54,517 bases of DNA from Macrostomum lignano (lineage: Eukaryota), in assembly GCA_002269645.1 (NCBI GenBank), contig NIVC01004216.1, positions 1 through 54,517 of the forward strand. Reading direction: 5' to 3'. Made by a program: the position numbers and the translations under genes. Shown here one piece after another: positions 1 to 28,921 of the stretch. Under the pieces are notes generated by a model. It made no database searches and had not been told where the DNA came from. It was given only the letters and a program-made list of their open reading frames with translations. Position 1 is the stretch's first letter, and the number at the start of each line of letters is the position of its first letter.

Positions 1-1036
1 AATAACTCAGCAACTGAGCAGCCCAATAACTCAGAATCTGAGCAGCCCACTCAGCAGCACAGCATCTCAGCTCAGCTCACGTGCTGCACTCCCGTCGCCG
101 TCAAGATCTTCAGAAGACTTGCTGAAGTCCTGCAGTGACTGGGCGAAGACGTCTCTCTGCAGTGCTGCGGGAAGGCTGGCCGGCACTGACAACTGCAGCC
201 GATGAAGACGCGGCAGATCCCGCCGATTGTCCAGGTGCAGAATGTGCAGCAAGTTCTCCTGTGCTGCTGTTGCGTGGGTTCACAGGGAGATGAGTTGACA
301 TTTATTATGCTTTCTCGCATGTACAGCTCAGCATGACAGCACTTACAGCTTGTGATGCAGCGCAGAAGCTGGCTGAATGCGTCTTCGATTGGCAATTGGC
401 CGACAACCTGCAGCAATTCGGACCAACTGCTGGCCGATTCATGGTAATGCCTTGAGTGGGATGAGCTGCATTGGGTGGAAATTCGATCAGGAGCAGACAT
501 TGCTGAGTAACGATAATTATTGTCAATTTCAAGAAATTTATCGATTAGATGAATTACACTTTTTACAGGTTTTCAAAGTTTAGTATTGAGGCACTCACCA
601 TTTTTAATATGATTTTCGTACACAGCCACAATATTGCCAATGTCAATTAGTCCTTCAATGTCGTCTTTAAATATATGGAAAAGAAGGCTAATAAGTCCTT
701 CGAGTTCAACGCTTTCTTCGCCACCGTCCATGGTTGATTGATATTATTTGTTGATAGGCTCAGCCGCTTTTTAGCTTATTTTTAATTAAAAACTAATTGA
801 TTAGTCCACTTGTCCGTTGTCCACTTGTCTTGCATTAACTAACTTAGTAATGCAAAGCAATGCAGTTGCAGTGACAGAGCTGCCTCTATTTTATCACGAC
901 AGGACAGAGCGAAACCGAAAACTGGAAAAGGGAAAGATTTCTTGGAAATTCCAAGCGCCCGCGCGAAGGGTTTAGCCGCCCGTTCTAAAAATAGATTTTA
1001 TTAGGATATAACCAATGTACACTGAGAGTCTACGTT
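1..1036. repeat. Left arm of a large inverted repeat (pairs with ~5710-6730)
   Basis: Visual alignment: 1-1035 is the reverse complement of ~5710-6730 with scattered substitutions and small indels. Homology ends at gtctacgt (1028-1035), the reverse complement of acgtagac (5710-5717). Confidence 0.95.
81..731 (-). CDS. 5' part (exons 1-3, CARD-like region) of an inverted RLR paralog; the gene continues off the left edge
   Basis: Reverse-complement copy of 6005-6657. Exons are 731-599 (ATG; MDGGEESVELEGLISLLFHIFKDDIEGLIDIGNIV...; gtgagt donor), 502-347 (156 nt; gtaagt donor) and 266-81 (gtgagc donor). Phases 1/1/1 give one open frame. It is followed by the same intronic minisatellite seen at 6660 onward. 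Confidence 0.75.
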
Positions 1037-1554
1037 CATCCCGCAAGCTAAATGTACATTTCATTGCGTACAAGAGTGAATTTGAGGTCTCTGCCCTTTT
1101 TCATTTCAAATCTTATTTTTTTGCTCTGGTTCTTTCTATACACACATTAAAGCAGCCTTGCAATAATTTCATTTCCATTTCTGCTTGTGCTTTCCTATCA
1201 AAGTGCTGTGTTACTCTACTCTGTCTATTGTCCTTCCTGACTCCGAGTAAATTATGTTCAGTAGTTTCATGCATGATTTTTGTGTTTGTTTTAGATAACA
1301 ACAAGCTGTTGAAACCCGCGGATTTTGAACCCGGGGAATTTCAATCCCTGGAACTATTTTGCATGTACTCGTATTCTAAAATCTGAGGTCAAACTCAAAC
1401 AAAAACTTGTTAATAGTTAGGTTTGAATTAAACATAAAATAGAGTACATTCGTGAAAAATTAGGATTTGAGGCAAACATTTATATTGTTGGCTGGGGTGC
1501 TGCGAACAGGCAAACTCTGGCCTCTGCCTCTCCTTATGTCCCTTGGATCCTTAG

Positions 1555-2055
1555 AAACTTCGATCTTCTCTTCTGTTTCCTCTCCTCTCTCTCGTCTCTG
1601 TCTCTTCTCTCTCTCCTCTATCCCCTATTCTCTCGTCTATTCCCTCTCCCTTCTATTCTTTTATCCCTCCTCTCCTCCCTCCTCTCTACTCTCTCCTCTC
1701 TCTCCTCTCATCTCTTCTCTTCTTTCCTCTCTCCTCTCTACTCTCTTCTATCGTCTCTTCCCTCACCTCTCTTCTCTCTCGTCTTTGCTCTCTTATCTAT
1801 CTCTTCTTTTATCTTTTCTCTCTTCTCTCTTCTCATTCTTTCTGCATGTTCTCTCCTCTCTCTTTCACTCTCTCTCTCCCTCTCTCTCCTCTCATCTCTC
1901 TGCTCTCTCCTGTACCATCTCTCTTTCTCCTCTAATCTCTCCCCTGTTTCCTCTCCTCTCTCGTCCTTTCTCCTCTTTCCCCTGTCCTCTCGGTTCTCTC
2001 CCCTCCCCTCCTCTCTCCTCTTCTTCCCTTTACTCTATCATCTCTCCTTTCTCCT

Positions 2056-2102
<47 letters not shown>

Positions 2103-2425
2103 TCTTATCTCCTCTCTTCTCACTCCTCTCTACCTCTCTCTCCCCTCCTATCTCCTCTCTGTTCTCTCTTCTCTTCTCACTCTTCTCTACTCTCCTCTCT
2201 CATCGATCCTCTGTCTCATCTCTCCCCTCTTCTCTCTTCCTCTTCTCTCCTCTACTCTTTCCTCTCCCTCCTGTCTCCCCTCCTCTCGCTTCCTCCTCCC
2301 ATATTCTCTGCTCTCTCCTCGTCCTCACCCCACTCGTCTCTCCTGTTATCTTATATCTTTTCTCTTACCCCCTCTCGCCCTTCCTCTCTTTCTAATAGTC
2401 TATTCCTTTTCTTTTTCACTCTCAT
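1555..2425. repeat. CT-rich low-complexity/microsatellite tract, probably a degenerate relative of the hAT MITE at 5069-5709
   Basis: Almost pure C/T on the + strand, including a (CT)n run near 2060-2098. It is preceded by caaactctggcc (similar to caaactccggcc at 5078) and followed by ctcatctggcccgcagccatgagct, nearly identical to 5640-5663. Confidence 0.8.
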
Positions 2426-3049
2426 CTGGCCCGCAGCCATGAGCTGGATTATTTATCTGGCCTTTGAGTTAAAAATCTACCGATCCTGCTTCGAAAGCCA
2501 GTTTGTGGGACGTAGTACTATCATGGTTGTTATCATTTCCCATGCTTTAATCACGTCATCTTTCTGGTCAATTAGCAGCGCTGAGAGAAATTTGTATATC
2601 TCCAGCTCCACCACCACAGTCTGCAGCAGTCAAACAACCATGGAAATACGCATTTCTTAGGAGGCCATTTAAATTTTAAAGTACCTTATACCTTAAAGTT
2701 TTAACCATCCCACATCGCCTTGATTTGCCATCCTTGTTTAACTGCTGCAGACTTGTCTATTCAGAGGAAAGGAAAGTGGTTTAAAATTGAATCTCTCGCT
2801 AAACTCTCTCCTCTCCACGCCTCTCCACTCGCGGGGTACAGAGAAGGCTATTAAAAAGTTATTCCAAAACACTGTACATTCGCAATGTACATTGAGCCCT
2901 ATCGCCTGACCCTTCGTCTGAGCTGGGGGAATGAGTGAGTGAGCGGCACAAACAACAGAAAAAGCAGACAAACTTCACATGCTTACAGTTTCTTTTTCGG
3001 TTGAGTTACAGAGTTGAAACTTTACATTTAGATAGAGAATGGGTTAATG

Positions 3050-3583
3050 AAGAATTGTGTCAGGTTTGAAGTCAATCGCTTTACGTGGAGCAAACTTATG
3101 GCAGCTGAAAGTTAGTCAATTTTGAAACCCATTTTGCACATCTGGGCCCAGATCAGGATCGGGAAAGAGAGGCAGGCGGGCGGAGGTTGGGGTGGTTGCT
3201 ACGCTGAAAAAAAACAGCCTAACTTTAAAAGTGCACAGCACCGCTCAGGATTAACTTTGAGACTCGAAATTTTACATGATCGTGCCAAAATAGTTTAAGA
3301 TTATCTGTGTCAAATTTGAAGAGAATCGGTAGAAGTAGAGCGGCGCTATGGAGGATTAAGTGAAAAAATCGCGCATTTTGAGCAGTTTTTTGTACTTTTA
3401 GGTAGGAAGACTTGAGTCTAGGAAATTTAAAGGTAGCCTAAGACATTCTCCGTAGTAAGTTTAGGGTGGGTGTAAAGTTTGGTGTAATTTGGTTGAGCGG
3501 TTTGGGAGTCCATAGCGAAGTAATTTGTCCACAGACAGACAGACAGACAGACAGACAGAGTTTTGATTTTTATAGGTAGAGAT
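3050..3583 (+). mobile_element. Helitron/Helentron-like non-autonomous element (DINE-1/Lep1-like) with an (ACAG)n microsatellite
   Basis: Contains caaatttgaagagaatcgg, then gtaaagtttggtgtaatttggttgagcggtttgggag, then (acag)n at 3531-3558, ending in ttttataggtagagat. This layout is typical of invertebrate DINE-1/Lep1-like elements. The 5' boundary is approximate. Confidence 0.55.
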
Positions 3584-3744
3584 CAATAAGCGCAATGGCA
3601 CTTAAACTCTAGAATTTATTTGTTAGTAACGAATTCACCGATTGTAATCAAGTTACATGACTTATGACTATGAGTATCTAGTCGTGGAACAGTCAGCTAC
3701 TTTAGGGTGTAGAAACTGGTTGATGTAGGTGCCGGTCCTCCTCT

Positions 3745-4210
3745 CTCCCTACCCTACCTCTCCCTTGACTCCCTACCTCCCTACCTCACTCCATACCTCT
3801 CTCCTACCTACCTCTATCTCTCTCCCTACCTCTCTCCCTACATCTCTCCCTACCTCTCTTCCTAAATCTCTCCCTACCTCTCTCTATCTCTCTTCCTACC
3901 TCTCTCCCTACATCTCTCCCTTACCTCTCTCCTGACCCCCTACCTCTCTTCCTATCTCTCTCCCTACATCTCTCCCTACCTCTCTATCTCTCTCCCGACC
4001 TCTCTCCCTACATCTTTCCCTTCCTACCTCTCCCTACCTCTCTCTACCTCTCTCTATCTTTCTCCCTACATCTCTCCCTACCTCTCTACCTCTCTCTATA
4101 TTTCTCCCTACATCTCTCCCTACATCTCTACCTCTCTCCCTAGCTCTCCCTACCTCTCTCTATCTCTACTTCCCGACATCTCTCCCTACATCTCTCCCGA
4201 CATCTCTCCT
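3745..4210. repeat. Pyrimidine-rich minisatellite built on ctctccctac(a/c)t
   Basis: Degenerate tandem units read directly from the sequence. Confidence 0.9.
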
Positions 4211-5068
4211 AATTGTGTAAACTAATTGTATAAGAACCTGATCAATTTTAATGAAATAGCAAGTATTGCTGTAAGTGTTGAAAAATGGGAACTTTTCCAA
4301 GGAAACTTGGGTATTTTTTAAGAAAGTAGACAAATTTTATCTATCACCGACATGCATTTTAATAGAGAAGTACAACAACTTAGTAAGAACTGGTGAAATG
4401 TACGATTTGGAGAGAAAAATTGGCCGATATGTATCACATGGGCGTCGCCACAGGGGAGACAGAGGGGACATAATCCCCCAGTAGAAGCTAAGGGGGCATG
4501 TCAAATACTTTGTCCCCCCCCCATACGCCATTTCACCTTGTAACTTGCTATGGAAACCAATAATTTTGCTTCAGGGCGCCAAAATATAGCGGCTTCAGCG
4601 CCAAAATGAGTGCCAATCAACACCGATGTTTAGCATAACGTATGAAACCATAGTAGTCTACTTACAGTAGAGATAAGAAATTGGCGTTTTAATCGCAAGA
4701 TTCTGTTTCACTTATACTTCACAAACACCCAGGGATTAAAATTCAATAATATTTCAGCATTTTACACTTAGTAATGCAATTACAATTTAACACCGAGCCC
4801 ACGAAATGTTGGCAGCTTGTCCAAAATGGTGAACAGTTGGCTGGTCTGGTCACCAGAGATTTCTTTTTTAAATGAAAAATCATTTAAAAGCTGTGATTTC
4901 CAACACGGCAGATACATGTAAATTTTATACAAGTTTGGCTGGACACTTTTTGGGGGATTCGGAAAATTTGCAAAACCCTAAACAACCCAAAAATCCTTTC
5001 CCGAACTCCGATCCCGATCCCAAATCCCAACCCCGAAACCTAACCACTCCTAGTGAACGTACGTAGAC

Positions 5069-5709
5069 CGGGGGTCAGCAAACTCCGGCCCGAGGGTCAC
5101 ATGCGGCCCGGCCCGCAATGCCTCCCTATCCGGCCCTCGGGTCCATGCACACTTTAAAATGGCATCCGGCCCGCTCAAGGTTTGTGTCTTCTCAGTTGTC
5201 TCTTCTCTTCTCTTCCCCTTTCTTTCCTCTCAGTTTCTCTCCTCTTCTCTCCTCTACTCTCTCCTCTACTCTCTCCTCTTCTCTCTCCTCTTCTCTCCTC
5301 TACTCTCTCCTCTACTCTCTCCTCTTCTCTCCTCTACTCTCTCCTCTTCTCTCTCCTCTTCTCTCCTCTACTCTCTCCTCTACTCTCCTCTTCTCTCCTC
5401 TACTCTCCTCTTCTCTCCTCTACTCTCTCCTCTACTCTCCACTTCTCTCATCTACTCTCTCCTCTTCTCTTCTCTTCTCTCCTCTCCTCTCATCTCCTCT
5501 TCTCTCCCCTCTCATCTAATCTCCTTTCTCACTAATCTCTTCTCTCATAGCATCTCTCATCTCGCTTCTTACCTCTCCTCTCTCCTGTCATCTCTCATCT
5601 CCTCTTACTTCTCTCTCGCCAATCCCTCTCCTCTCCACTCTCATCTGGCCCACAGCCATGAGCTAGATTCTTTACCTGACCCCCGAGGTAAAAAGTTTGC
5701 TGACCCCTG
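5069..5709. mobile_element. Non-autonomous hAT-superfamily DNA transposon (MITE) with a CT-rich interior
   Basis: 16-bp TIRs cgggggtcagcaaact (5069-5084) and agtttgctgacccctg (5694-5709), with one mismatch. Perfect 8-bp direct repeat acgtagac at 5061-5068 and 5710-5717. An 8-bp TSD and CAGGGG-type termini are hAT hallmarks. Confidence 0.9.
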
Positions 5710-6730
5710 ACGTAGACGCTCAGTGTACATTGGTATGTAGAATCTATTTTTAGAACTGGTGGCCATACCCTCCGCGCGCGCTCGGAATTTCCAAGAAATC
5801 TTTCCCTTTTCCAGTTTTCGGTTTCGCTCTGTCCTGTCGTGATAAAATAGAGGCAGCTCTGTCACTGCAACTGCATTGCTTTGCATTACTAAGTTAGTTA
5901 ATGCAAGACAAGTGGACAACGGACAAGTGGACTAATCAATTAGTTTTTAATTAAAAATAAGCTAAAAAGCGGCTAAGCCTATCAACAAATAATATCAATC
6001 AACCATGGACGGTGGCGAAGAAAGCGTTGAACTCGAAGGACTTATTAGCCTTCTTTTCCAAATATTTAAAGACGATATTGAAGGACTAATTGACATTGGC
6101 AATATTGTGGCTGTGTACGAAAATCATATTAAAAATGGTGAGTGCCTCAATACTAAACTTTGAAAACCTGTAAAAAGAGTAATTCATCTAATCGATAAAT
6201 TTCTTGAAATTTGACAATAATTATCGTTACTCAGCAATGTCTGCTCCTGATCGAATTTCCACCCAATGCAGCTCATCCCACTCAAGGCATTTTCATGAAT
6301 CGGCCCAGCAGTTGGTCCGAATTGCTGCAGGCTGTCAGCCAATTGCCAATAGAAGACGCATTCAGCCAGCTTCTGCGCTGCATCACAAGCTGTAAGTGCT
6401 GTCATGCTGAGCTGTACATGCGAGAAAGCATAATAAATGTCAACTCATCTCCCTGTGAACCCACGCAACAGCCACACAGGAGAACTTGCTGCACCATCTG
6501 CACCTGGACAATCGGCGGGATCTGCCGCGTCTTCATCGGCTGCAGTTGTCAGTGCCGGCCAGCCTTCCCGCAGCACTGCAGAGAGACGTCTTCGCCCAGT
6601 CACTGCAGGACTTCAGCAAGTCTTCTGAAGATCTTGACGGCGACGGGAGTGCAGCACGTGAGCTGAGCTGAGATGCTGTGCTGCTGAGTGGGCTGCTCAG
6701 ATTCTGAGTTATTGGGCTGCTCAGTTGCTG
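5710..6730. repeat. Right arm of the large inverted repeat (promoter and exons 1-3 of the RLR gene)
   Basis: Reverse complement of 1-1035. Confidence 0.95.
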
Positions 6731-9700
6731 AGTTATTGGGGCTGCTCAGTTGCTGAGTTATTGGGGCTGCTTAGTTGCTGAGTTATTGGGGCTGCTTAGT
6801 TGCTGAGTTATTGGGCTGCTCAGATGCTGAGTTATTGGGCTGATCAGTTGCTGAGTTATTGGTCTGCTCAGTTGCTGAGTTATTGGGCTGATCAGTTGCT
6901 GAGTTATTGGGCTGATCAGTTGCTGAGTTATTGGTCTGCTCAGTTGCTGAGTTATTGGGGCTGCTCAGTTGCTGAGTTATTGGGGCTGCTCAGTTGCTGA
7001 GTTATTGGGCTGCTCAGTAGCTGAGTTATTGGGGCTGCTCAGTTGCTGATTTATTGGGCTGCTCAGTTGCTGAGTTATTGGGCTGCTCAGTTGCTGGGTT
7101 ATTGGGCTGCTCAGTTGCTGAGTTATTGGGCTCCTCAGTTGCTGAGTTATTGGGCTGCTCAGTTGCTGAGTTGTTGGGGCTGCTCAGTTGCTGAGTTGTT
7201 GGGCTGCTCAGTTGCTGAGTTATTGGGCTGCTCAGTTGCTGAGTTATTGGGCTGCTCAGATTCTGAGTTATTAGGCTGCTCAGTTGCTGAGTTATTGGGC
7301 TGCTCAGTTGCTGAGTTGTTGGGGCTGCTCAGTTGCTGAGTTATTGGGCTGCTCAGTTGCTGAGTTGTTGGGGCTGCTCAGATTCTGAGTTATTGGGCTG
7401 CTCAGATTCTGAGGTATTGGGGCTGCTCAGTTGCTGAGTTATTGGGGCTGCTCAGTTGCTGAGTTATTGGGCTGCTCAGATTCTGAGTTATTAGGCTGCT
7501 CAGTTGCTGAGTTATTGGGCTGCTCAGTTGCTGAGTTGTTGGGGCTGCTCAGTTGCTGAGTTATTGGGCTGCTCAGTTGCTGAGTTGTTGGGGCTGCTCA
7601 GATTCTGAGTTATTGGGCTGCTCAGATTCTGAGGTATTGGGGCTGCTCAGTTGCTGAGTTATTGGGGCTGCTCAGTTGCTGAGTTATTGGGCTACTCAGT
7701 TGTCAGAAGACTCGCAGACTCGCTGAGGTATTAGAATGCTCAGATGCAGATTTGCTGAATTGTTGAGCTTCTGTGACTGAGTTGCTATCCTTTGTTTGTC
7801 TTTCTGATTCCTGTCACCTGATCCCGTCACATGGTCATGGTGACATGACCCCATCTCCAGATCCCTTACCAGATCTCCCCTTATCGCCTCAACCCACAGA
7901 TGTTCATTGCGTTCTTCACCAGCTTATCAATTGCGCACCTCACGACTGGTTTGAGCACCTCATTCTCGCTGCGATCGCTGACCTCGAGAGCTCAGTCGAT
8001 CTGCTCGACACTATTGCACCGTTCGGCCAAGACTTTGAGTCAGGTGAGAGACCAGATCATTGCATCCGAAATAGCCGGTCAAATCACTGAACAAAAGCAG
8101 CGGAAGACACGCCTTTGCCCAAAATGGGTACTCTAAAATGATCACTTTCATTTTAAATGCATTGCCACCCCTTCATCTCAGAGCTCCCGGCGCTTCAGCC
8201 TAAGCTCTACAACACGGTGTCGAGTCCGGAGTTCAAGGAGGCCAAAAAGTCGGTCGTCGACCAATCGAACCGGTGGTTCGATCTCAACGGACTGAAGTTC
8301 GACTCTGACACTTACAAGCTCGAGCGGGTAGCCAATCAGCAGCCTCCATCGGCGTCTGGGTCTCAGCCGTCTGGCAACAACGAGCTCGTCGGCGGGCAGC
8401 TCCGCGACTACCAGTTGGAGTTGGCAGAGCCGGCCCTGTTAGATCGCAACTCGATAGTGATCGCGCCCACTGGCTCTGGGAAGACTCTGGTAGCCGTTCA
8501 TGTCACTCTGCAGCTGCTCAAGGCCGAGCCCCAAGCGAAGGTCAGTGCTGAAAGCAATAAATTTATCATACCACACAACATAATGGCAGTGGGAATAAAA
8601 TGGAGACAGCGGAGTTCACAATTGCCGTCAGCGCTGGTTTACAAGACGATGTCGCCGAATGCTTTGCGCCAGTGCGCCAAGTGCCATGTTTCATGTTAAA
8701 TGTTTGAACATTTGCCCCATTTTCAAACACCATAATATCTTAGGTGGCACTTCTGGCATCCACTAATCAGCTGGTTCAGCAGCAATACGACAAGTTCAGG
8801 TCCGCCCTGCCCTCACCTTGGCGGGACAGAGTTGACCTAATCCTGGGAGGCAAAGACAACAAGAATCGAAAGCCATTCGCCCTGTCTATGAAGAAAAACT
8901 CCATCGTGGTCATTAGCACCCAAATTCTATTAAACGAGCTTGATAGAAAAACAGTTGCGAACATTTCCGATTTCCGCCTCATCATATTCGACGAATGCCA
9001 CAATTGTGCAAAGAGCCACGCCAGTATGAAAGTGATGATGCACTACCTGCGACTGAAGAGAGATCTGGAACAAGAGAATCAATCGGAAAGCTGTCGAGAA
9101 ACCCGCCTGCCACAGATTCTTGGGCTAACGGCCAGTCCAGGTAAAATGCTAGAAAGGCATGAATTATTAAATTCTTGTTTTTAAGCTATTTCACGTCTAA
9201 CGATGCCTGATCTGTTCATTGTGTCTGATCTGTAAGGACACTCAATGTCCATTGTGTCTGATCTGTAAGAACACAACTGTCCATTGTGTCTGATCTGTAA
9301 GAACACAACTGTCCATTGTGTCTGATCTGTAAGGACACTCAATGTCCATTGTATCTGATCTGTAAGGACACTCAATGTCCATTGTGTCTAATCTGTAAGG
9401 ACACTCAATGTCCATTGTGTCTGATCTGTAGGGACACTCAATGTCCATTGTGTCTGATCTGTAAGAACACTACTGCCCATTGTGTCTGATCTGTAAGGAC
9501 ACTCAATGTCCATTGTATCTGATCTGTAAGGACACTCAATGTCCATTGTGTCTGATCTGTAAGGACACTCAATGTCCATTGTATCTGATCTGTAAGGACA
9601 CTCAATGTCCATTGTGTCTGATCTGTAAGGACACTCAATGTCCATTGTGTCTGATCTGTAAGGACACTCAATGTCCATTGTGTCTGATCTGTAAGGACAC

Positions 9701-12700
9701 TCAATGTCCATTGTGTCTAATCTGTAAGGACACTACTGCCCATTGTGTCTGATCTGTAAGGACACTACTGCCCATTGTGTCTGATCTGTAAGGACACTCA
9801 ATGTCCATTGTGTCTGATTTGTAAGGACACTCAATGTCCATTGTGTCTGATCTGTAAGGACACTCAATGTCCATTGTGTCTGATCTGTAAGGACACTCAA
9901 TGTCCATTGTGTCTAATCTGTAAGGACACTACTGCCCATTGTGTCTGATCTGTAAGGACACTACTGCCCATTGTGTCTGATCTGTAAGGACACTCAATGT
10001 CCATTGTATCTGATCTGTAAGGACACTCAATGTCCATTGTGTCTAATCTGTAAGGACACTCAATGTCCATTGTGTCTGATCTGTAAGGACACTCAATGTC
10101 CATTGTGTCTAATCTGTAAGGACACTCAATGTCCATTGTGTCTGATCTGTAGGGACACTACTGTCCATTGTGTCTGATCTGTTAGGACACTCAATGTCCA
10201 TTGTGTCTGATCTGTAAGGACGCTACTGCCAGTGGACAAAAACGCCAATTAAACACCCAAAACATCCAAACGTCCAAAAAACCTGCACCTCAAGGCACCG
10301 GCAAAGCCAAGGGACCAGAGGATGCCAAGGAGCATCTTGTTCAACTGTGCGCCAATCTTGACTGCCCCTACCCTGTCACTGTGCAGCGCTATCTTCAGTC
10401 ACTATTTAAATTTAACTCAGATCAAGACTGTCAAATCCTCTCGGTACCTGCTAAACAGAGCTCGGAAGACGTATTCATTAAATTTTTAAACGAGCTGATG
10501 GACCTTGGGGAGAAGCTGCTATATAGCAATCGGAGCTCGCTGCTAAACTCAGAGCCGGAAGCCCTCCAGATTGCATCAGCGCCGCCAAGAGGCACTCCAA
10601 CTTACACAAACTACTGCTCCGATGTTAAGTACAAAATTCACCAAGTGGCAGACGAAGAGATGGGCAAAGATCTGTTCGCCTGCAGTCGTTATCTGGACAC
10701 ATTCAATCAAGCGTATATGATTGCGCAGTTCTACAATCCCCGAGGTGCGTGGCGCTACATCAAGAAAGAACTTCGAGCTGTGGACGAACTGGCTAAGTCC
10801 CCAGTCTGCGAGGCGGAGAGTCAACTGCGGCAGCGACTGCATAGCCTGATCGGGCCGCTAGAAAGATTCTGCGACACCAAAGAGGCTTCGGTAAGTTTGT
10901 TATTGAGTGCATTTAGCCAAATGCAACGTTCCATTATTTTGATGACTGGTTTATCGCTTGCAGTCGAGTCCTCCGCTGGACAAATTCGTGGAAATCCTTC
11001 GCAACCAGTTCAACTCGCAAGCCGACTCGCGAGCGATTGTTTTCGTACAACGGAAAATCTACGCTCAGGTGATTACTGAGTTCTTAAACGAGCAACTACC
11101 GCATCTACCGGCTGCCTATGTGACTGGCGCAACTTCAAGCGACGCTTCCGGAGGCACTAATGCTTCTGAGCAGCAGGCTCGCATTGAGGGCTTCCGGCAA
11201 GGCGACTACAAAGTGATTGCTTGCACCAGTATGGCGGAAGAAGGCCTAGACATACCGGACTGCAACCTGGTGGTGCGCTACTGTCACGTGACAAACGAAA
11301 TCGCCATGGTGCAGACCAAAGGCCGGTGCCGGGCCAAAAACAGCGCCTATTACGTGATTGTAGCTGAGACACAGGAGGCGCTGCGTCACAAGGAACGCGA
11401 AAATGAGCTGCGCGATGCAATGATGCAGCAATCAGTGGCGTGCGTTACTGATTTAACGACTGAAGAGTTGGTAGTCAAGGTGAGAATCTTTCAGTTTTTT
11501 TGTCGACAGTTTCAATCGCTGTGTTGACTTAAGGACAACTTTGTTTTTCTCTGTGCTGTGCCTCTTCGAGGGTTATAGCCAGGGACTACTATAACATCGA
11601 GATGGGAAACTAGGCAAATCATGGCAAAGTTTTTACGAGGCTGGTTTGCGAGGTTTACGAGGATCTTTGAGTAGTCCCTGGTTTTATAGCCTAGTGAGAG
11701 GGTTTTAGCTTAGTGTTTAGAGTGTCGGACTCATGACTAGAAGGTCGGGTTTTCGATTCTCTACCCACTCGGAACAATTCTTGGAAAAGATACTTCACTC
11801 TAATTTTTTTTCAGTTCACCCAGCTGTAAGATAGGTGCCAGCATTAGCTGGGGTAATTGAGGGTGTGTGGCGATCTCCCAGTCCTTTGACTGAACAGCCG
11901 TACGCAGCCTTCAGATGCGCCGCGCAATAGCTGCGGCTGAGCTGTCGGTTGTACATCTGCTCATTAGGGCAGGTGTAATCAATTATAGACAATTAAAGTT
12001 ATGAATTCTCTTCTCTGATTCTCTTCTTTACGAGTACTTGAGGTTCGGTTCTTGTGCATTATTAATGTTGGGTGTGGCCATAGACGATTCAGTTGCACAC
12101 ACACCCATGCAGCCATGAGCTAAAGAAGCAATGCTTCAAGCTGGGAAAATATACTTTTTTGCGATTGAATTCGTCCAAACTGCAAAACCTTTCGTCCACA
12201 AATGCTTTTTTAATGGGAGCTAAATTTAGATCATACCATAGACAACTGTGTTCACGCAAAAAGGTTCATCCAGTTTGTAAAACATTTCGTCCCCTAGACT
12301 AGAGACGGAGTGTACTGTTCCTACCATAGTTAACACCCAATTGACTGTTCGCTTTTGCTACCACTACAGCTACAGCAACGCATATCTTCCATTCTGAACC
12401 CGGCAAAACAGTCGAAGATGAACCGAGGCCCCTACCATCCAGTGTCAAACGAAGACCGCAGGCGATTAGCCTTGGCTGTTGAAGAAGGCCGCGATTGGAA
12501 ACAACTGGCCGATATCCTTGGGATCAAGAGAAAGACAGCCAAAACTTAGGCTGTCTGACAGGCTTTGTTCAATATCTCGTGATATCAAATAAAGTCGCTC
12601 CGTTTAGCTGTTAGCTGTTTGGACGAAGGGTTTAGACGAAATGTTTTACAAACTGGATGAACCGTTTTGCGTGAACACAGTTGTCTATGGTATAATCTTA

Positions 12701-14149
12701 ATTTAGCTCCCATTAAGAAAGCGTTAGTGGACGAAAGGTTTTGCAGTTTGGACGAATTCAATCGCAAAAAAGTATATAAAAGATATATAAAAGAAGGTTA
12801 CGATAACATGAAATAAGACGCTCGGTTAAGAGAGTAAATACTTAAGAGGTCTTGGCTCACTGTCTTCCGCTAGAGAAGATGTCATAACAATTAAATTTGT
12901 TAAAATTCTTTTAGCCTTCTATAAGCTTTATACGCTACTGCTATAAGCTTTCAATTGCAGATGCTGGATTACCAGGAAAAGGCGCTGAAAGACGAAGAGG
13001 AAAAACGTGCTAATAATAGCACACCTATCGGAAGTGACGTCATCATTGATAGCGACCACGAAATTCTGTGCTGCAAGTGTAAAGAAAAACTGTCGGATTC
13101 GACTCGACTTCGATTGATTTGCGGAATCCATCGCGTCGTCCTGGATGCCGACATGTTTACTGGAGGCCAACGCATTGTTGGTCAACATGGAGGCGAGATC
13201 AAAAAGGTTCCCGGAATGGATATGATTGGTGTGGATTTGCTGTGCGGCTACTGCAGCTACGGACCTGTGGCTAAAATTGCTCGCTACAAAGGCCAATTTT
13301 TCCCTTTGTTGGACCCGGAATGCGTCTGTTTTCGCCGATTGAATGACAAGGTAAGACTTCTATAGTTGGTATTGAAATTCTGTTCATTTAGAACGCAAAT
13401 GAAATAAAATATGTAAATACTGAGCCTGTAAGAACATGTACGGTCATGTCAAGGCTTACGGGGAGAATTGCTGAGATGTCAAGGCTGATGGGGAGAATTG
13501 CTGAGATGTCAAGGCTTACGGGGAGAATTGCTGAGATGTCAAGGCTTACGGGGAGAATTGCTGAGATGTCAAGGCTTACGGGGAGAATTGCTGAGATGTC
13601 AAGGCTTACGGGGAGAATTGCTGAGATGTCAAGGCTTACGGGGAGAATTGCTGAGATGTCAAGGCTTACGGGGAGAATTGCTGAGATGTCAAGGATGAGA
13701 GGTCAGAAGCTACATGTGGTTTATTCAAAAAATGATTCTATTTTTTGTTGCCTTTTTAAAGGGGGCGCTGATTGCTAGCAGTCACTATCGGCCCTAAAAG
13801 ACGGCCTCAGCATTTCAATAATTTACCCCCATATGAGCCTTGACATCCGAGCAATCCCCCATAAGCTATTGACATCTCAGCAATGAAACAATGCAGCAGT
13901 GAAAGTGTAAAAGCCTAACGAATTACCTCGGAAGGAATCGATCATGGCCGGAAGATAATGGATCGCAACACCTTTCCTCATTTACTTTAGAAATTGGAAA
14001 AACAGGTGAGAAAGTGGAAACATACAAAATCCTTCCTTCGCGATGTTGCTGAGCTGAGCAGTGACGATAGAGACTACTGGCGTCGGGCAGTTCCGCGTCT
14101 GCCCAGACAGTACCGAGCTGCGGCAGTTCGAGGCGGAGCGCATCGTTAA
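6005..14149 (+). CDS. RIG-I/MDA5-like receptor (RLR): tandem CARD-like regions, DExD/H (DECH) helicase, C-terminal Zn-binding regulatory domain; 10 exons
   Basis: Exons: 6005-6137, 6235(or 6272)-6391, 6472-6657, 7900-8043, 8182-8540, 8744-9140, 10295-10890, 10964-11479, 12961-13350 and 13991-14149 (TAA). All have GT-AG ends, and phases match from exon 3 onward. Motifs: Q motif LRDYQLE, motif I APTGSGKT, motif II IIFDECH, motif III GLTASPG, EHLVQLCANLD, motif IV AIVFVQRK, motif V TSMAEEGLDIPDCN, motif VI VQTKGRCR, CTD ILCCKC and LLCGYC, terminal VRKWKH. The CARD-like segments are LISLLFQIFKDDIEGLIDIGNIV and LHQLINCAPHDWFEHLILAAI. The exon 2 acceptor is ambiguous (see findings). Confidence 0.9.
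6660..7702. repeat. 24-25 bp minisatellite (gctgctcagttgctgagttattgg) in RLR intron 3
   Basis: About 40 tandem units. Each contains the dyad CTCAG-ttg-CTGAG. Confidence 0.97.
9215..10222. repeat. 33-bp minisatellite (ccattgtgtctgatctgtaaggacactcaatgt) in RLR intron 6
   Basis: About 30 tandem units. It explains the 11-aa periodic ORFs (MDIECPYRSDT, CLICKDTQCPL). Confidence 0.97.
11575..11688. mobile_element. Short MITE-like element
   Basis: Inverted termini tatagccagggactact and agtagtccctggttttata. Confidence 0.5.
11700..11908 (+). mobile_element. tRNA-derived SINE (copy 1)
   Basis: A-box-like tagcttagtgtt, a tRNA-like loop actcatga and B-box-like ttcgattc. The body ttcacccagctgtaa...gccagcattagctggggtaattgagggtgtgtggcga matches the reverse complement of 43748-43949. 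Confidence 0.8.
12152..12774 (+). mobile_element. Tc1/mariner-superfamily internal-deletion derivative with long TIRs and a transposase N-terminal remnant
   Basis: About 140-bp inverted repeats (12152-~12292 and ~12636-12774) starting tacttttttgcgattgaattcgtccaaactgc, flanked by TA on both sides. The interior encodes an HTH-like stub MNRGPYHPVSNEDRRRLALAVEEGRDWKQLADILGIKRKTAKT*. Confidence 0.75.
13445..13695. repeat. 30-bp minisatellite (atgtcaaggcttacggggagaattgctgag) in RLR intron 9
   Basis: About 8 near-identical units, plus about 2 degenerate inverted units at 13836-13883. Confidence 0.95.
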
Positions 14150-14719
14150 TGTGATCAACTATTTTTGTACTTGGTGGGACTGGGTCCTCATTTTTTAAAT
14201 ATTGTGGACATGATGCTACTTTGGTCAGCTACTACTTACAGACTAGTAATATATATTGGTTCATATTGTTCGCAACGTGCTGCATCGGTGAGCAAAATTT
14301 ATCCTCTAAACTGCAACCGTATGGACTGATTCGTCGTATAAATTACTAAACAATGTAACGACCCTAAGAACAAGCACAGAATATTCAGAAACAATTGTTT
14401 AATGATTATATACCTTCTTTATTATGCATGTAATAACCGAAAATATATGTCGTTCATGGATTTACTGCTAAGCCAAATGTTACGGAGGCAGCTGATAACG
14501 AGTCATGTCATGTTACGAACGTATGATATAATATTTTGAAAAATGGGAACTTTGAAAAAACGATGCATTGAAATTGGTTATGAATCTGTATAATTTTAGT
14601 AGTATTAAATAATATAAGTAGATCTGCTATTATTGTCCATTTAAGCAACATACCAGGTAGCAAAGTCTGTAATCAGTTACAGTAAATAATTAAGTCATGC
14701 ACGGCTATTCCAACCCTGT

Positions 14720-15430
14720 CTATAGTCACCAATCAATCATAGAACACCCTGAGCATGTCTACAGTCAGCAATCAATCATAGAACACCCTGAGCATGTCTA
14801 CAGTCACCAATCAGTCATAGAGATCCTTGAGCATGTCTACAGTCACCAATCAGTCATAGAGATCCTTGAGCATGTCTACAGTCACTAATCAGTCATAGAA
14901 CACCCTGAGCATGTCTACAGTCAGAAATCAGTCATAGAGATCCTTGAGCATGTCTACAGTCACCAATCAGTCATAGAACACCTTGAGCATGTCTACAGTC
15001 AGCAATCAATCATAGAACACCTTGAGCATGTCTACAGTCACCAATCAGTCATAGAACACCTTGAGCATGTCTACAGTCACCAATGAATCATAGAACACCT
15101 TGAGCATGTCTATAGTCACCAATGAATCATAGAACACCTTGAGAATGTCTACAGTCACCAATGAATCATAGAACACCTTGAGCATGTCTATAGTCACCAA
15201 TGAATCATAGAACACCTTGAGCATGTCTACAGCCACCAATCAGTCATAGAACACCTTGAGCATGTCTACAGTCAGAAATCAGTCATAGAACACCTTGAGC
15301 ATGTCTACAGCCACCAATCAGTCATAGAGCACCCTGAGCATGTCTACAGCCACCAATCAGTCATAGAACACCTTGAGCATGTCTACAGTCACCAATCAGT
15401 CATAGAACACCTTGAGTATGTCTACAGTCA
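14720..15430. repeat. 39-bp minisatellite (agtcaccaatcagtcatagaacaccttgagcatgtctac) between the convergent RLR and GPCR genes
   Basis: About 18 tandem units. Confidence 0.95.
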
Positions 15431-15517: not shown

Positions 15518-18500
15518 TCAAACTCGCCTCATCAGAAACGGCTCCCTGGCAGCAGACGTCAGCCCGTGGCATCGCTGATCTTGCTCGGGTGACAGCTCCA
15601 CTACAGACAGCCGCTTCATCAGTCTGCTGCTGGTTACCAGGCTCTGCTTCATACTGGCCAGAATTGCTTTTAGGTGTCTACGAAAAGTGGCCTGACTGAT
15701 GAATTGAACAATGGGCCGAGCTGACAGCCAGGTCAGCAGCAGCAGATAGACTACAGAATCTACGGTGAAGAACAGATCCTGAAATCGATTGGTTGGTGAT
15801 TGTTTAGAATCCAAACATTTACTGTAAGATCTGCTGGTTCGACAACTGGGGGAGCCGGTATGAAGAGGCGATAGGAAAGATACTGCGAGAGACAGGAGAG
15901 ACGACAGGGGAGAACATGTAGGCAACTGGAGAGAACAGGGAGATAGGAAGTAAGTGTAGTCCAATAGAAAATGTTGACGCGTTCTCGATATTGAATGCGA
16001 ATATGCGAATGGGAGTGGATCCCTGGTTCAACTGCCGCGGTCACATTCGTTTGGACTTTTGTACACGAGAATTTGCCGGTTTGAATCGTTTTTGTGCGAT
16101 TCAAAACCCATGAAGACCAAACCGCAAGGCACAAGTAGTGTACATGCATAACTATAAGAAATTTGAAAAAAGGTACAGTATGGGAGCGCTTGTGTGTTCT
16201 CAGGAGTCTGCGGAATGGCCAGAATCATCTCAGCGCTGGTTGTGAAAACGATGTCGATGAAGTCGTTGCGCCAGAGTTCCCCACAGCTGTTTTTATTTTT
16301 ATACTACACAGAATCGAATATAGGATGCATCTTTGGTGCCACCCTCCCCCCCCCCACCACAAACCTGTCTGTTCTTCCTATCCAGAAAGCTCGCATGCGA
16401 CTGCGTGCCCAGCAGGGAGCGCAGGCTCTGCGGCACGAAGATGTGCTCCTGCATCATGTGGCTGGCGCTGCTCACAAACTTAGTAAAGGTAAAAATCGAC
16501 GTAGGTGCGTTGAACAGCAGCTCGAGACCGACGGTGATCAGACTGGCTCGGCGAATCTCGACGAAGGCGTCGACATCGATTAACACGACTTGGCCGATGC
16601 TCTCTGGCTGCAGCCACTGGAGCTGCCCAGTTCGGCACAGCTGCAGCAGCCTCAGGCCGCACAGAACCGGCACAACCATTGGCAGAAAGTCGCCAATCAT
16701 CAGATCAATCAGTGGCCAGATCACCGCTTTGTACCGAATCTCAACCCACTTGTCGGAGAAGCCACAGTGGTAGCCTCGGTTGGTTTCGCCCGGATTGTCC
16801 AGCCGGGTCAGGGAGAAAGTCCACAGGAACTGGCAGTTCAAGCTCATCAGTATGGCGCAGAACAGGACGAAGCAGTTGAAAACTCGCTCCCGGTTGTACT
16901 TGGGATAGAACTTGTCCAGCCGCTGGTACAGCAGCAGAGTGTCGATGGCGATCGCCAGGAAGCACAGCTGCCTCATGTGCGCAGCCAGGCTGTACACCAT
17001 CGGGTAGACTTGACAGCAGGTCTCGCAAGCGAACAGCAGCATGAAGTTGACGTCCACCCGGGCAACCGAGCGGAGCCAGAGATCGCCTGCGCTGATCAGG
17101 ATTAGCACCGAGTCCAGGCCGGCCACAGCGCTAGAGAAGTAGCACAGCGGTAGGAAATTGCGACCCATCCTGGTGAGCGTGGCCGCGGCCAACAAATTGC
17201 CCGCTCCTCCTAGAAGAAGAAAAACCGGCAGCAAGAAAGCGATGACCTGACGCCACTTGTCCGGCAGGTCTGGTCGGCCTCGGTAGACGGTGCACTCTGG
17301 CAGCAGCTGACGCTCTTCGCCAGCCGGATGCGCCTCCGACTCGGTGTCCGGGTCGTGCGGCGGCGTCAGTTCTGGCCGGACCGTCTGCGGCATGTTGACA
17401 GTTCCGTTGCCTAGCAACGAGTTGAAGAATTTCCGCTGCAGATCGCCGGATCCTTTCTGAACGTCGATCGCTCCGTAGCCTTCGGAGACTGTTGAAGATA
17501 AAAATCAAGTTGAAGACGTTGAAGTAGTTTTTTTCGATGCACTATAATATTTCAAGCGTCTTGAAATGATGCTTAAGATAGGAAAAAAGGCACACCTGAA
17601 ATAGCAGTAATTCCCTATCACTATCTTGAATAAATATATCATAAGTAATGGTATATTTCACTGGGCTTGGGCTGTGTAAACTCGGAATTTATAGTGTGCA
17701 CAATCCGGGTCTCTTGGCAGATATCTTGTAAACAATATAGATATACGATATCTTTCTCTATAATCCAATCCATCTGTGTAGGCTTGACGAACAGGAACTG
17801 TTCCTTCAAGATTTATGAGCCTATAGAATCATTAAGGCACAAAAATATGGAATGCATAAGTATATGACTAAGAATTCCAGAAGGATTATAATTCTTACGA
17901 CAAAGAGTTCACTTAAGTAGTATAGTAATCTTCGGTTGCTCAATATTTGGCGTCTTTCAATCGCAATGTTCTGTTGCACAACAGTGGCATCTGATCTATA
18001 GTCTATGGCAGTCTTCTGTTGCACAAAATTCGGTATTGTCTATGGCCTACATGGTAATCTTCTGTAGAACAACATGTGGAATTGTCTATGGTCTATGGTC
18101 CTATGGTAATTGTCTGTTGTAGAACATGTTGCATTGTCTATGGTCTATGGTAATTGTCTGTTGTAGAACATCGAACATGTGGCATTATCTATGGTCTATG
18201 GTAAATTGTCTGTTGAACAACATGTGGCATTGTCTATGGTCTAATGTAATTGCCGTTGAACAACATTGGCAATTGACTATTGTGGCAATAGACTATTGTC
18301 TATAGTCGATGGTAATTTTAGGTTGTTTAGCATGTAGCATTGTCTATAGCGGCCTATGGCAATCTACCATTGTTTATATTAGATATCACTTGTCATGACA
18401 TGACCAGATAGCCAGCAATAAAAGTCCAACAGGAAATCTTACAGTCCATATTCTCGAAGAAATCGGCGCCCAGTCCAAGTTTCTTGAGATTTTCTTCAAC

Positions 18501-22270: not shown

Positions 22271-23184
22271 CTCAAACACAAACTCAGACTATAAGAGCCA
22301 TTTACTCATAAGCTCCTCATTGTAGCTTGAGCACAATTCGTTTATTATATATCAAATTGACGGGACTGAAAATACTGTACAAGTTTCCAGCGTTTCTTGC
22401 CTGAATTTCAAGGCTTTAAATTTGTTTCTAGTAAAACTGACAGAGAAATGAAATGAAAAATGTTAAGATGAGTAGTATATATTAATTGCTGTTTATCTAC
22501 ATTAAATGCCACTCTGAAACGCCGGAATTTAGACGTTAGTGAGATTTTTCACACAAAAAAAAATTTCATAATTAGTGCTACATTCAAACAGGTTAATGTG
22601 GTGAAACTAGATCGGGTGACCCAAATAGAAGACACTTAATAATTTACTGGCTATATAGACGTAAAATTTAAACTGGATGGAGCTTCAGATAAAAAGTACA
22701 CTGTTTTTAAGAGTTTACATAAATCCTGTCGACCAATCAACCCACGTTTTATGCGTGTTTTGACCATAGACAGTTCAACACTCTATGGCTGCTCTACACT
22801 TTCTAGTCTTCGGAGCACTTATTTAGTCTATTTTTCACTGAGTGGAGCCATGGATGCAGATGCATCAACAAGAAGCCAACCCTGATGGATCCTCAAGTGT
22901 GCGTGGCGTGTGTACTTCTAAGACCTTGTCCTGGATTCACTGGGACTGAGAAGAACGTCCGACACAGATTCTGTGGCCTCCAAGTGGACGAGTCCACCAT
23001 CGGGCCTTCGTCGTCCAGGGCTGCTTCGAAGTTCGCGTTGGATTTTTCATTGGATGTTGATGCATCCGCATCGAAGGCTCCAGTCAGTGCAAAATAGACT
23101 AAATGAGTGCCCCCCTCCGAAGAATAAGTCCACATTTGGATTACCCAGTACAAACTTCCATTGGATACTGAAACTATTGCGTCA

Positions 23185-24210
23185 TCATCGTCTTAGTCGA
23201 ATACTGGACGCAACTCGTCCAACTGGTCGGCCACCTGACGCTTCTGGACGTAAAGCCTCGGCGCCCGGCCAGCAGCAATGACAAACTTCGGCCAAAACAA
23301 TGCGAAACTTCTCACTCTGCCGAGTGTAGAGCGGAAACTGCATGCAGCTGGCCAACACCTCGAGCGTCAGCGCCAGCGATCGCAGACCTCTGGACACCGA
23401 CGAGCCATCGTCGACGCAACGTCGAGCGGCAGCGCTGAGAAAGATGGCGGGAGTGAGCAGCACCAGGTGTAGGCTGGACATGTACAACAGCATGCAGGTC
23501 GTGCGTCGGTGTCGACGAACAACCGGCGGACAAGCGGCAGGCTGCAGGAGGGCGCGCTGGATGCCCAGCAAGCCAGCCAGTAGGCGTTCTCGCTGACGAA
23601 ACGAATGCCGCAACACTCGAATGGTGCACGCGTTCAGCACTAGAATGGCCGCTAGCGGTAGGCCTCGCATCGCCGCGTCGGCCGCGCCGAAGACCAGGCT
23701 CACCGACTCTGACCCCTGAACTGTGCAGTTCTGATAGCCTCCCATCAGGGTGTACACCGTGCTCAGCTCAGCCGAGTAGACCGCCGCAGGCAGAACCGAC
23801 GAAGCGACCAAAGCTGCAAAGATGATTCGCCTTCTCGAGCTGACCGCCCCAGCCGGTAGTTGCCGGGGCCGTCTAACCGCGCACAATCTCTCGGCGCTGA
23901 TCACCGACACCGAGAGCAGCGACGCTCGGGCCAGCGAGGGCATTGCCAGTCGACGAGTTGCGACGGCAAGCAAGTTGTTGGACTCATCCGGCCACGACTG
24001 CGTGGCCACTATACAGTGAATCAGAGCCAGCGTCAGGAACAGCAGATCAATGATTGCCAGCGCCAGAATGCACCGGTTGATGAGGTGCGGCAGCATCATT
24101 CGATGGACGGTGATTCGAGCGATCACCGCCGAGCTGACGATACCGACGAGACTGCAAGCCGGGATCAGCACGAACTGGCAGGCGAAATCCAGCTGCTCCA
24201 GGCCTCCCAT
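23185..24210 (-). CDS. Intronless class A peptide-type GPCR, 341 aa
   Basis: Single ATG-to-stop ORF with seven hydrophobic stretches. LAIIDLLFL in TM2, SAERLCAV at the DRY position, GLPLAAILVLN in TM5, LVLLTP in TM6 and CMQFPLYTRQSEKFR in TM7/helix 8. Confidence 0.85.
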   Translation of the reverse strand: MGGLEQLDFACQFVLIPACSLVGIVSSAVIARITVHRMMLPHLINRCILALAIIDLLFLTLALIHCIVATQSWPDESNNLLAVATRRLAMPSLARASLLSVSVISAERLCAVRRPRQLPAGAVSSRRRIIFAALVASSVLPAAVYSAELSTVYTLMGGYQNCTVQGSESVSLVFGAADAAMRGLPLAAILVLNACTIRVLRHSFRQRERLLAGLLGIQRALLQPAACPPVVRRHRRTTCMLLYMSSLHLVLLTPAIFLSAAARRCVDDGSSVSRGLRSLALTLEVLASCMQFPLYTRQSEKFRIVLAEVCHCCWPGAEALRPEASGGRPVGRVASSIRLRR

Positions 24211-27009: not shown

Positions 27010-27605
27010 TAGGAAATGTTAATGAGAGGCTGGTTTTCGCCGAAAAAATACACTACGGAGATGGGAACTTTTCTCACTATTTTCATATTCAAATTGTTAT
27101 TGCTTTCGATAGGAAGCAGACCCAGTGTTCATTGTTTGATATGTTTTGCCTTTTTTATAGCTCTATTGATATTCATAAAGCTTTTTGTTCAGAAAATTAG
27201 GATTCTATGTTAGTTTTTTATTCTACATAGAATTGCACATGCCCTGTGCCTAAAAACCATTAAAATGACACGGCTCAGCTCATTGGTTTTATGAGTCTAT
27301 TTTTTGTGATTCTTAGCTGACTGTGTAACAATATGTGCATTAGAGATAATGAAATAGATTCATAAAACCATATTGAGTCCAGCTGTACAATGCATTTTTA
27401 TGATTTTTAGGTACGTAGAATAAAAAATAAAACACAGAATTCTAATTTTCCGAACAAAAGCTTTATGAGTATCGATAGAGCTATAAGAGAGGCAAAGCAA
27501 TAAAAAATGAACATAGGGTAATTTGAATATAAAAAAGTGAGAAAAGTTCCTATCTCCGTAGTGTGTTTTTCGGCGAAAACCAGCCTCCTTAACATTTTCT
27601 CGGAA
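27010..27605. mobile_element. Foldback/MITE element with ~270-bp inverted arms
   Basis: Arms ~27010-27305 and ~27350-27605 are reverse complements (for example gctggttttcgccgaaaaa and tttttcggcgaaaaccagc). A partial further copy lies at ~45490-45665. Confidence 0.8.
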
Positions 27606-28512: not shown

Positions 28513-28611
28513 ATCCAAGCTGCACTCTCCTACAGACTACAGGCTGTTAAAGGCTCTTCTCTCTGGCTAAAGTACAATCAAGTATCGCTTTTTGCAGTCA
28601 AATTACGAGTA

Positions 28612-28921
28612 TAGTCTATGGCCCAAACCAAAATAGCTAGAAGGCGCAATCAGGTTTCCAACTGAGTCAATCAATTTTCCATATGTTTAAAACCAAAAGA
28701 TCTTGGCAAGTCCTACAGTGTATTTTGCTGTTAAAATGCAAACAATTTAAAAAATGGCCACTGCACCAAAACTAACCTCTTAGAAAAGCTTCTGCATTGA
28801 ATGGTCTCAAGTATAGCTTGGCCATAGACAAAATTCTGCTCCTTTTCCATGGAGTCCTCTGCTCACTGGGTGTGGAAAACTGATTGCGCCTTGCAGCGAT
28901 TTCGGTTTGGGCCATAGACTA
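28612..28921. mobile_element. 310-bp MITE-like element with perfect 18-bp TIRs
   Basis: tagtctatggcccaaacc (28612-28629) and ggtttgggccatagacta (28904-28921). Confidence 0.65.

Follow-up and report, generated by a model that had tools for sequence, protein, structure and literature searches.

Does the end of a small transposable element mark the exact point at which part of an antiviral receptor gene was duplicated in inverted orientation? The question is raised by a stretch of 54,517 bases from the flatworm Macrostomum lignano (contig NIVC01004216.1), called the window below, to which all coordinates refer. Near its left edge the 5′ region of a RIG-I-like receptor (RLR) gene is present in two inverted copies, or arms, which are separated by a spacer and by a miniature inverted-repeat transposable element (MITE) adjoining the right arm. 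An earlier note on this DNA had claimed that the homology between the arms stops at the target-site duplication (TSD) of the MITE, and that the element probably caused or delimited the duplication. The breakpoint was found to coincide with the TSD to the base pair. The features concerned are as follows (TIR, terminal inverted repeat).

1–1035, minus strand: left arm, carrying the promoter-proximal ~300 bp, exons 1–3 (exon 1, 731–599; exon 2, 465–347; exon 3, 266–81) and the start of a 24-bp minisatellite in intron 3.
1028–1035, minus strand: terminal 8-mer of the left arm, GTCTACGT on the plus strand, the reverse complement of the MITE TSD.
1036–5060: single-copy spacer without the MITE, 4,025 bp.
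5061–5068, plus strand: TSD copy 1, ACGTAGAC.
5069–5709, plus strand: intact MITE, 641 bp, with TIRs at 5069–5084 and 5694–5709.
5710–5717, plus strand: TSD copy 2, ACGTAGAC, also the first 8 bases of the right arm.
5710–6737, plus strand: right arm as far as the left arm follows it, with the promoter-proximal region, exons 1–3 (exon 1, 6005–6137; exon 2, 6272–6391; exon 3, 6472–6657) and the start of the intron-3 minisatellite.

The arms were aligned with BLASTN. Positions 1–1035 (minus strand) match 5710–6737 with 96.8% identity over 1037 columns, including 22 mismatches and 7 gap openings, and the alignment ends exactly at 1035 and 5710. The left arm is clipped by the window start, and its visible length of ~1 kb is a minimum. 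Base 5710 opens the right TSD (5710–5717), and the left TSD at 5061–5068 was confirmed. The left arm bears the same 8-mer in reverse at 1028–1035, and homology ends after base 1035; on all these points the earlier note had read the locus correctly. The 8-mer ACGTAGAC occurs exactly three times in the 54,517 bases, at 1028–1035 (minus strand), 5061–5068 (plus strand) and 5710–5717 (plus strand), where shuffles expect 0.76 occurrences.

With about 10 TIR pairs in the window, a MITE end would fall by chance exactly on one or the other inner breakpoint with a probability of ~0.0007, which rises to ~0.005 if a distance of ±3 bp is allowed. When only young elements are counted, the probability is several-fold lower, which gives an overall range of ~0.0001–0.005. 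A coincidence of MITE and breakpoint to the base pair is statistically unusual and calls for an explanation. By two to three orders of magnitude, it speaks for a breakpoint at the end of the transposon.

The earlier note had made its claim depend on homology not continuing past the TSD once the element is removed, and the claim survived this comparison. With the MITE and one TSD copy taken out, the reverse complement of 1036–1335 aligns with 4761–5060 at shuffle level (97 of 500 shuffles scored as well), as does the reverse complement of 1036–1491 with 4211–5060 (74 of 500). For the 100-bp span past the TSD, 324 of 500 shuffles scored as well. The left part of the spacer (1036–1491) is single-copy in the window, without a TIR remnant and without homology to the right-hand end of the spacer. 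No long inverted repeats that could represent eroded arm extensions were found inside the spacer, except for a 31-bp pair at 2618–2753, and the search for a TIR remnant or a decayed MITE near the left junction (1021–1140) remained at shuffle level. Since homology does not continue past the TSD, no inverted repeat extends the arms into the spacer and no decayed TIR lies at the junction, the homology between the arms stops at the TSD. The sole possible extension is of 3 nt (TGA) and requires dropping one ACGT unit at 5057–5060.

These results bear directly on one alternative, in which the MITE was copied into both arms and the left copy then lost the element and everything inward of it, through a transposase cut at the MITE end and a one-sided deletion. 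Such a history would yield the identical base-pair coincidence, and breaks left by hAT excision are known to undergo repair with deletions. It demands two events, and all inward homology must also have vanished from the spacer, where none is seen; neither an excision footprint nor a remnant of a second TSD follows base 1035. We consider this history highly unlikely.

The intact element was characterised next to a second copy of its family, with the following parts.

5200–5550: CT-rich microsatellite core of the intact MITE.
5676–5685: internal subterminal repeat CTGACCCCCG within the intact MITE.
1492–2488, plus strand (same orientation as the intact MITE): MITE-L, a degenerate second family copy whose TSD is not recoverable.

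An autonomous hAT partner of the MITE would be expected to share its termini (CAGGGGTCAGCAAACT). The TIRs of the MITE are 16 bp long and complementary at 15 of 16 positions, with a perfect 14-nt core, and the TSD is exactly 8 bp in length because the bases immediately outside it differ. The TIRs of hAT elements are short (about 10–25 bp) and start with the consensus YARNG, a consensus reportedly set out by Rubin, Lithwick and Levy in 2001. The 3′ TIR of the intact MITE starts with CAGGG, which fits this consensus, the 5′ TIR starts with CGGGG, which is off at position 2, and MITE-L starts with CTGGG. The 8-bp TSD together with the 16-bp TIR and its CAGGG 3′ copy make element 5069–5709 look like a hAT-type MITE, in agreement with the earlier assignment. 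It has no real coding capacity, and no open reading frame (ORF) for a hAT transposase was found within the window.

MITE-L, whose CT-rich core is expanded, was recognised by its decayed TIR and by a 25-mer in the 3′ subterminal region that has been conserved; the CT microsatellite is ~350 bp long in one copy of the family and expanded to ~750 bp in the other. MITE-L is an independent insertion, since its flanks are unrelated to those of the intact copy. The family is thus visible in two copies with non-homologous flanks, as expected of a mobile element. A local alignment that ran ~40 columns past the element end had raised MITE-L and its flank as a segmental duplicate of the intact MITE and the right arm; this candidate was rejected, because the flank alignments did no better than shuffles. 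The Drosophila Mar family and plant hAT MITE families are said to consist of small elements without coding capacity that lie close to promoters and have short TIRs and an 8-bp TSD. The M. lignano MITE resembles them in all these respects; it differs in its large internal CT microsatellite and in being a candidate hAT relative of unclassified family. Exact-pattern scans of metagenome contigs with an arm 24-mer and a MITE core 21-mer gave no match, nor did exact-protein look-ups for four ORFs of the window. Publications on Macrostomum yielded nothing usable about hAT elements or RLRs.

The reading preferred here is that the breakpoint was defined by the MITE end, either through sister-chromatid transposition (SCT) or through the repair of a transposase break. 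We assign it a probability of about 0.35. The order of events that we infer, with the role of a transposase and the partner terminus included, would begin with the insertion of a hAT-type MITE ~295 bp upstream of a single-copy RLR gene, producing the duplication of ACGTAGAC. A hAT transposase would later have cut the 3′ end of the MITE and freed the gene-side flank, which starts with the TSD; this flank would then have been joined in inverted orientation to DNA ~4 kb upstream. Two routes could lead to this join: sister-chromatid (alternative) transposition with a second, oppositely oriented terminus then present at ~1036, or repair of a one-ended transposase break. The window has the order expected of the product: inverted arm, junction, inter-element segment of 4 kb, TSD, MITE, TSD, arm. 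Later gene conversion would have held most of the arms at ~99% identity. To the left of the window, SCT predicts a second MITE copy, with a new 8-bp TSD, where the left arm ends on its outer side, and also a second spacer copy and the partner terminus.

The comparison with SCT rests on the Ac/fAc system of maize. There, two termini, one from each sister chromatid, are excised and reinserted elsewhere with a new 8-bp TSD, and the products are an inverted duplication and a reciprocal deletion (bioRxiv 10.1101/2020.01.07.897926). At the centre of the duplication, the host flanks of the two excised termini are ligated with a footprint, and the original element is retained beside one arm; the footprints of Ac typically change the first nucleotide on each side (bioRxiv 10.1101/2020.01.07.897926). 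The maize p1 alleles p1-ww-id1 and p1-ww-id4 (Zhang & Peterson 1999), as far as they are described in bioRxiv 10.1101/2020.01.07.897926, are of this kind. From this scheme, an SCT centre is predicted to run arm, TSD, retained element, TSD, inter-element segment, footprint, reversed TSD, inverted arm. Starting at the right and moving left, the window shows the right arm from 5710 onward, the MITE with its TSDs (5061–5717), the spacer (5060–1036), the junction between 1035 and 1036, and the left arm ending in GTCTACGT. One arm therefore adjoins an intact element end and TSD (between 5709 and 5710), and the other starts with the reversed flank, joined to the far end of the segment (between 1035 and 1036). 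The local layout is that of the published centre of an Ac/fAc SCT inverted duplication (bioRxiv 10.1101/2020.01.07.897926), the class of event to which the earlier note had appealed. An intact element with both TSDs is no argument against SCT, because the SCT centre predicts a retained element.

The locus shares with the maize p1 cases an element of the hAT superfamily, 8-bp TSDs and a centre composed of a retained element by one arm, an inter-element segment and a ligated-flank junction. It is unlike them in that only the central junctions are visible here, the first flank base is unchanged and the junction possibly contains microhomology; moreover, it involves a flatworm MITE of 641 bp, and the arms are of kilobase scale or larger. 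Hybrid element insertion of the Drosophila P element, reportedly described by Preston, Sved and Engels and by Gray, Tanaka and Sved in 1996, is said to use transposon ends of sister chromatids together. It is likewise reported to give duplications and deletions that start exactly at the element end. It differs in that P and hAT are distinct superfamilies and a single P element gives mainly direct duplications and deletions, an inverted product needing two oppositely oriented termini.

The preferred reading, a breakpoint set by the MITE end, draws on several observations. Homology ends at the boundary of element and flank, the left arm ends with a complete reversed TSD, the TIRs are intact with a perfect 8-bp TSD, homology is absent past the TSD and inverted repeats are absent inside the spacer, and chance would produce the coincidence with a probability of only ~0.0001–0.005. 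A second family copy 3.5 kb away means that the MITE family is locally present. By analogy, the same centre is found in published SCT products, which is consistent with this origin.

Features at and near the left junction weaken the case for the element as the cause. The following sites are involved.

1032–1038, plus strand: left junction heptamer ACGTTCA, whose reverse complement TGAACGT is 5054–5060; candidate microhomology.
5057–5060, plus strand: an extra ACGT just before TSD copy 1, giving ACGTACGT.
5733–5783, plus strand (left counterpart 953–1011): divergent patch between the arms, 23–75 nt from the junction.

The junction reads GTCT-ACGT-TCA-TCC. In the inverted identity between its heptamer and the last 7 nt of the spacer, 4 nt belong to the palindromic ACGT at the start of the 8-mer; a match of the remaining three (TCA/TGA) would arise by chance with a probability of ~0.018, and the register needs one ACGT unit removed. 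The extra ACGT at 5057–5060 may have arisen by slippage, as a duplication of 4 bp, or as palindromic (P-type) nucleotides. The pre-insertion site (5045–5076 with the MITE removed) forms a quasi-palindrome with 10 of 16 positions paired, among the top 0.5% of window positions. It includes ACGT/ACGT and is centred exactly between 5060 and 5061, at the edge of the TSD and not in its middle.

Several points, gathered here, weigh against a breakpoint set by the MITE end. The TGAACGT match suggests, from sequence likeness, that microhomology primed the copying of the left arm from a template lacking the MITE; should one of the ACGT units (5057–5060) be a slippage duplication, the left copy holds 3 bases from the far side of the MITE site. 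The first flank base (1035, pairing with 5710) is unchanged, so that the Ac-type footprint change is missing on this side of the junction. Mutations clustered 23–75 nt from the junction are less characteristic of cutting and ligation than of error-prone repair synthesis or of a patchy conversion by some third paralogue. No TIR remnant or partner terminus was found at the left junction (1021–1140), and MITE-L has the wrong orientation and position to supply one; no hAT transposase gene was found among the ORFs of the window. The quasi-palindrome at the pre-insertion site may also speak against a clean transposase origin. The prior for natural alternative-transposition events is low, and since a scan of the whole genome led to this window, a rare coincidence somewhere is to be expected. 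Taken together, the microhomology at the junction and the patch of mutations shift the odds towards a transposase-independent origin by one to two orders of magnitude.

Such an origin would have started with a break at ~1035/1036 that folded back, or with a fork that switched template, primed by the inverted microhomology (TGA/TGAACGT). The 5′ region of the gene would have been copied and a ~4-kb single-copy spacer left behind; the MITE would have landed later at the boundary of arm and spacer, by pure coincidence or through a hAT preference for open promoter DNA or for the quasi-palindrome. Human fold-back inverted duplications have single-copy spacers of 766–70,466 bp (median 3,428 bp) and 2–8 bp of inverted microhomology at the junction (Hermetz et al. 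2014, PMC3907307). The spacer of 4,025 bp lies inside the range of roughly 0.7–70 kb and close to this median (PMC3907307), and the 7-nt identity between the reverse complement of 1032–1038 and 5054–5060 adjoins a clustered patch of mutations. In these respects, the locus resembles fold-back inverted duplications, and also replicative template-switch rearrangements of the DUP-NML-INV/DUP type, with a kilobase-scale single-copy spacer (4.0 vs. a median of 3.4 kb), candidate short inverted microhomology and a mutation cluster near the junction. The quasi-palindrome as a landing site, and a perfect TSD with 15/16 TIR complementarity as marks of a young insertion, fit as well.

The price of this history is a coincidence of ~1e-4 to 5e-3, since the staggered cut of the MITE has to take exactly the first 8 bases of the arm, and the fold-back model gives no reason for a transposon on the breakpoint. 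For the 3-nt match to count, one ACGT unit has to be set aside, which costs an additional slippage event of 4 bp. Classical fold-back gives terminal deletions or dicentrics and therefore needs a second, unseen junction: the human cases are terminal with an adjacent deletion, whereas the M. lignano case is interstitial and presumably fixed. On balance, a transposase-free duplication is a serious but doubtful explanation.

The differences between the arms are unevenly distributed. The inner ~86 bp are ~80–84% identical and the remainder ~99%: 9 substitutions and 3 indels fall into the inner stratum, as compared with 13 substitutions in the other 942 bp (Fisher p = 2.7e-5). Nearly all inner differences lie at 5733–5783, with a further G/T difference at 5718. 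Outside the inner patch (5796–6737 vs. 1–952), 11 of the 13 substitutions are exonic (exons 1–3), and 2 lie in ~500 bp of intron and promoter (Fisher p = 0.009); the arm substitutions include three adjacent doublets, at 6292–3, 6473–4 and 6495–6. The further exon differences by which the copies can be told apart lie at 6061, 6076, 6332, 6337 and 6351. The exon bias looks like diversifying change or patchy conversion from other paralogues and not like neutral drift. The introns of the two arms are as similar as the exons, or more so.

This stratification is what a gene-conversion barrier might leave. In that case the inverted pair would be old, with the MITE inserted in one copy; its 641-bp heterology would block conversion tracts, so that the gene side was homogenised and the far side diverged beyond recognition. 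The succession of ~99% identity (942 bp), ~80–84% (inner 86 bp) and nothing beyond indicates that homogenisation or mosaic exchange has acted, and a similarity of introns at least equal to that of exons also fits a barrier. Three age classes are needed, however, including an unconverted one much older than the inner stratum, with complete loss of similarity setting in exactly where a block of 23/24 identity stops, and no residual similarity is left in the 450–850 bp past the boundary. Moreover, the inner stratum has accumulated only ~10% substitutions, and homology of that age would remain detectable past the boundary. A conversion barrier is accordingly an unlikely source of the breakpoint.

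The composition of the spacer and of the arm differences also bears on a possible assembly artefact, in which two paralogous or homeologous RLR loci of a partly polyploid, repeat-rich genome were falsely joined through CT-rich low-complexity tracts. Such tracts are long and lie at 1567–2320, 3769–4212 and 5200–5550 of the spacer and MITE region, and one difference between the arms is a change in homopolymer length, typical of long-read error. The arm differences are mainly substitutions (22 mismatches vs. 7 gap openings), and a unique 4-kb spacer is unlike a palindromic-read artefact. A false join would not alter the finding that homology between the copies breaks off exactly at the TSD. An artefact thus has a very slim chance of explaining the locus. 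The probability remaining beyond the five explanations set out above belongs to anything else.

The second claim of the earlier note, that the element probably caused or delimited the duplication, is supported in part. Breakpoint and TSD coincide to the base pair; causation is not established, and the details of the left junction agree more with joining by microhomology on a template lacking the MITE than with a clean footprint of a transposase. The mechanism proposed belongs to a known class, and between the scar of a transposase-made duplication and a roughly one-in-a-thousand coincidence, the window alone does not decide. The suggestion of the earlier note of a route to immune-receptor family expansion goes further than the window does, which shows ~1 kb of the second copy, with the promoter and exons 1–3 and with exon 2 frameshifted as assembled.

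Maize, rice and laboratory Drosophila offer well-documented cases of alternative transposition. To our knowledge, such transposition has rarely been shown to yield gene duplicates that persist in wild animal genomes. If the MITE end did define the breakpoint, the base-pair-exact junction beside an antiviral receptor gene would be a concrete natural case of alternative transposition, and whole genomes could then be screened in a simple way for MITE ends lying on the ends of segmental duplications. The most specific form of this reading can be advanced only tentatively: a naturally fixed SCT-type event in an animal, driven by a pair of hAT MITE termini and duplicating in inverted orientation the promoter and at least the 5′ part of an antiviral receptor gene, with MITE ends acting as precise breakpoints that seed head-to-head immune-gene pairs. 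If the placement is a coincidence, the locus is still a clean, if ordinary, fold-back-type inverted duplication with a spacer in a flatworm.

The duplicated gene was assigned from its right copy.

6005 to ~13365, plus strand: RIG-I-like receptor gene, right copy, multi-exon, with minisatellite-rich introns.

Pfam matches in the right copy comprise DEAD (DEAD/ResIII, 2.3e-21), Helicase_C (2.3e-18) and the RIG-I_C insertion domain (24.7 bits, cut-off 23.2), along with a weak RIG-I_C-RD match of 20.9 bits, under the cut-off of 25.6. The closest public proteins are helicases of the RIG-I/MDA5/LGP2 type, with ~33% identity. N-terminal tandem CARDs of the RIG-I/MDA5 type gave no Pfam match in exons 1–3 (146 aa; 6005–6657) or in the next ORF (7773–8090), and the N-terminal peptide had no homologue at E ≤ 0.001 in a collection of 5.8 billion protein sequences. 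The N-terminal region may be a lineage-specific signalling domain. Exon 2 is 119 nt long in the left copy and 120 nt in the right, the left copy having CC in place of CCC (indel at left 434, right 6304). This 1-bp deletion leaves the left copy frameshifted as assembled, and the copy may be a pseudogene or the frameshift a long-read homopolymer error. One MITE-like element with long TIRs (143 nt, 96%) sits within an intron of the RLR gene.

A perfect palindrome, CAATGTACATTG, at 2881–2896 in the spacer resembles the near-palindrome CAATGTACACTG, which is found at 1013–1026 and 5719–5732, 2–3 nt inside the terminal 8-mer of each arm. The surroundings have no wider homology, and the likeness could reflect a shared binding site or chance. 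The shared palindromic 14-mer had suggested a third copy of the promoter and exon 1 in the spacer (~2500–2900); it was rejected, as the MAFFT alignment was unconvincing and tblastn with the exon-1 peptide returned the two arms only. No tRNA or Rfam match was obtained in 1–7000, in a test for a SINE or a structured RNA. The rest of the window contains the following features.

2489–5060: remainder of the spacer, unique sequence with a (CAGA)n run near 3535–3560 and a CT-rich minisatellite at 3769–4212.
16299–17417 and 23185–24210, minus strand: single-exon ORFs of 341 and 372 aa, which by eye may be membrane-receptor-like.
42946–44879, plus strand: sulfotransferase gene, matching an M. lignano UniRef protein, with one exon 100% identical.
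48162–54517, plus strand: large gene with a low-complexity first exon of 640 aa.
12149–12777, 22812–23113, 27026–27587 and 28583–29000: other MITE-like elements with long TIRs.
27142–27499 inside 27026–27587, and 28612–28921 inside 28583–29000: nested pairs of MITE-like elements.
6689–7702, 9213–10221, 14717–15430, 33127–34165 and 38420–40048: examples of minisatellites.

Minisatellites with units of 12–50 bp and a length of ~1 kb each occur at very high density throughout the window; many of them are intronic, and they give rise to spurious long ORFs.

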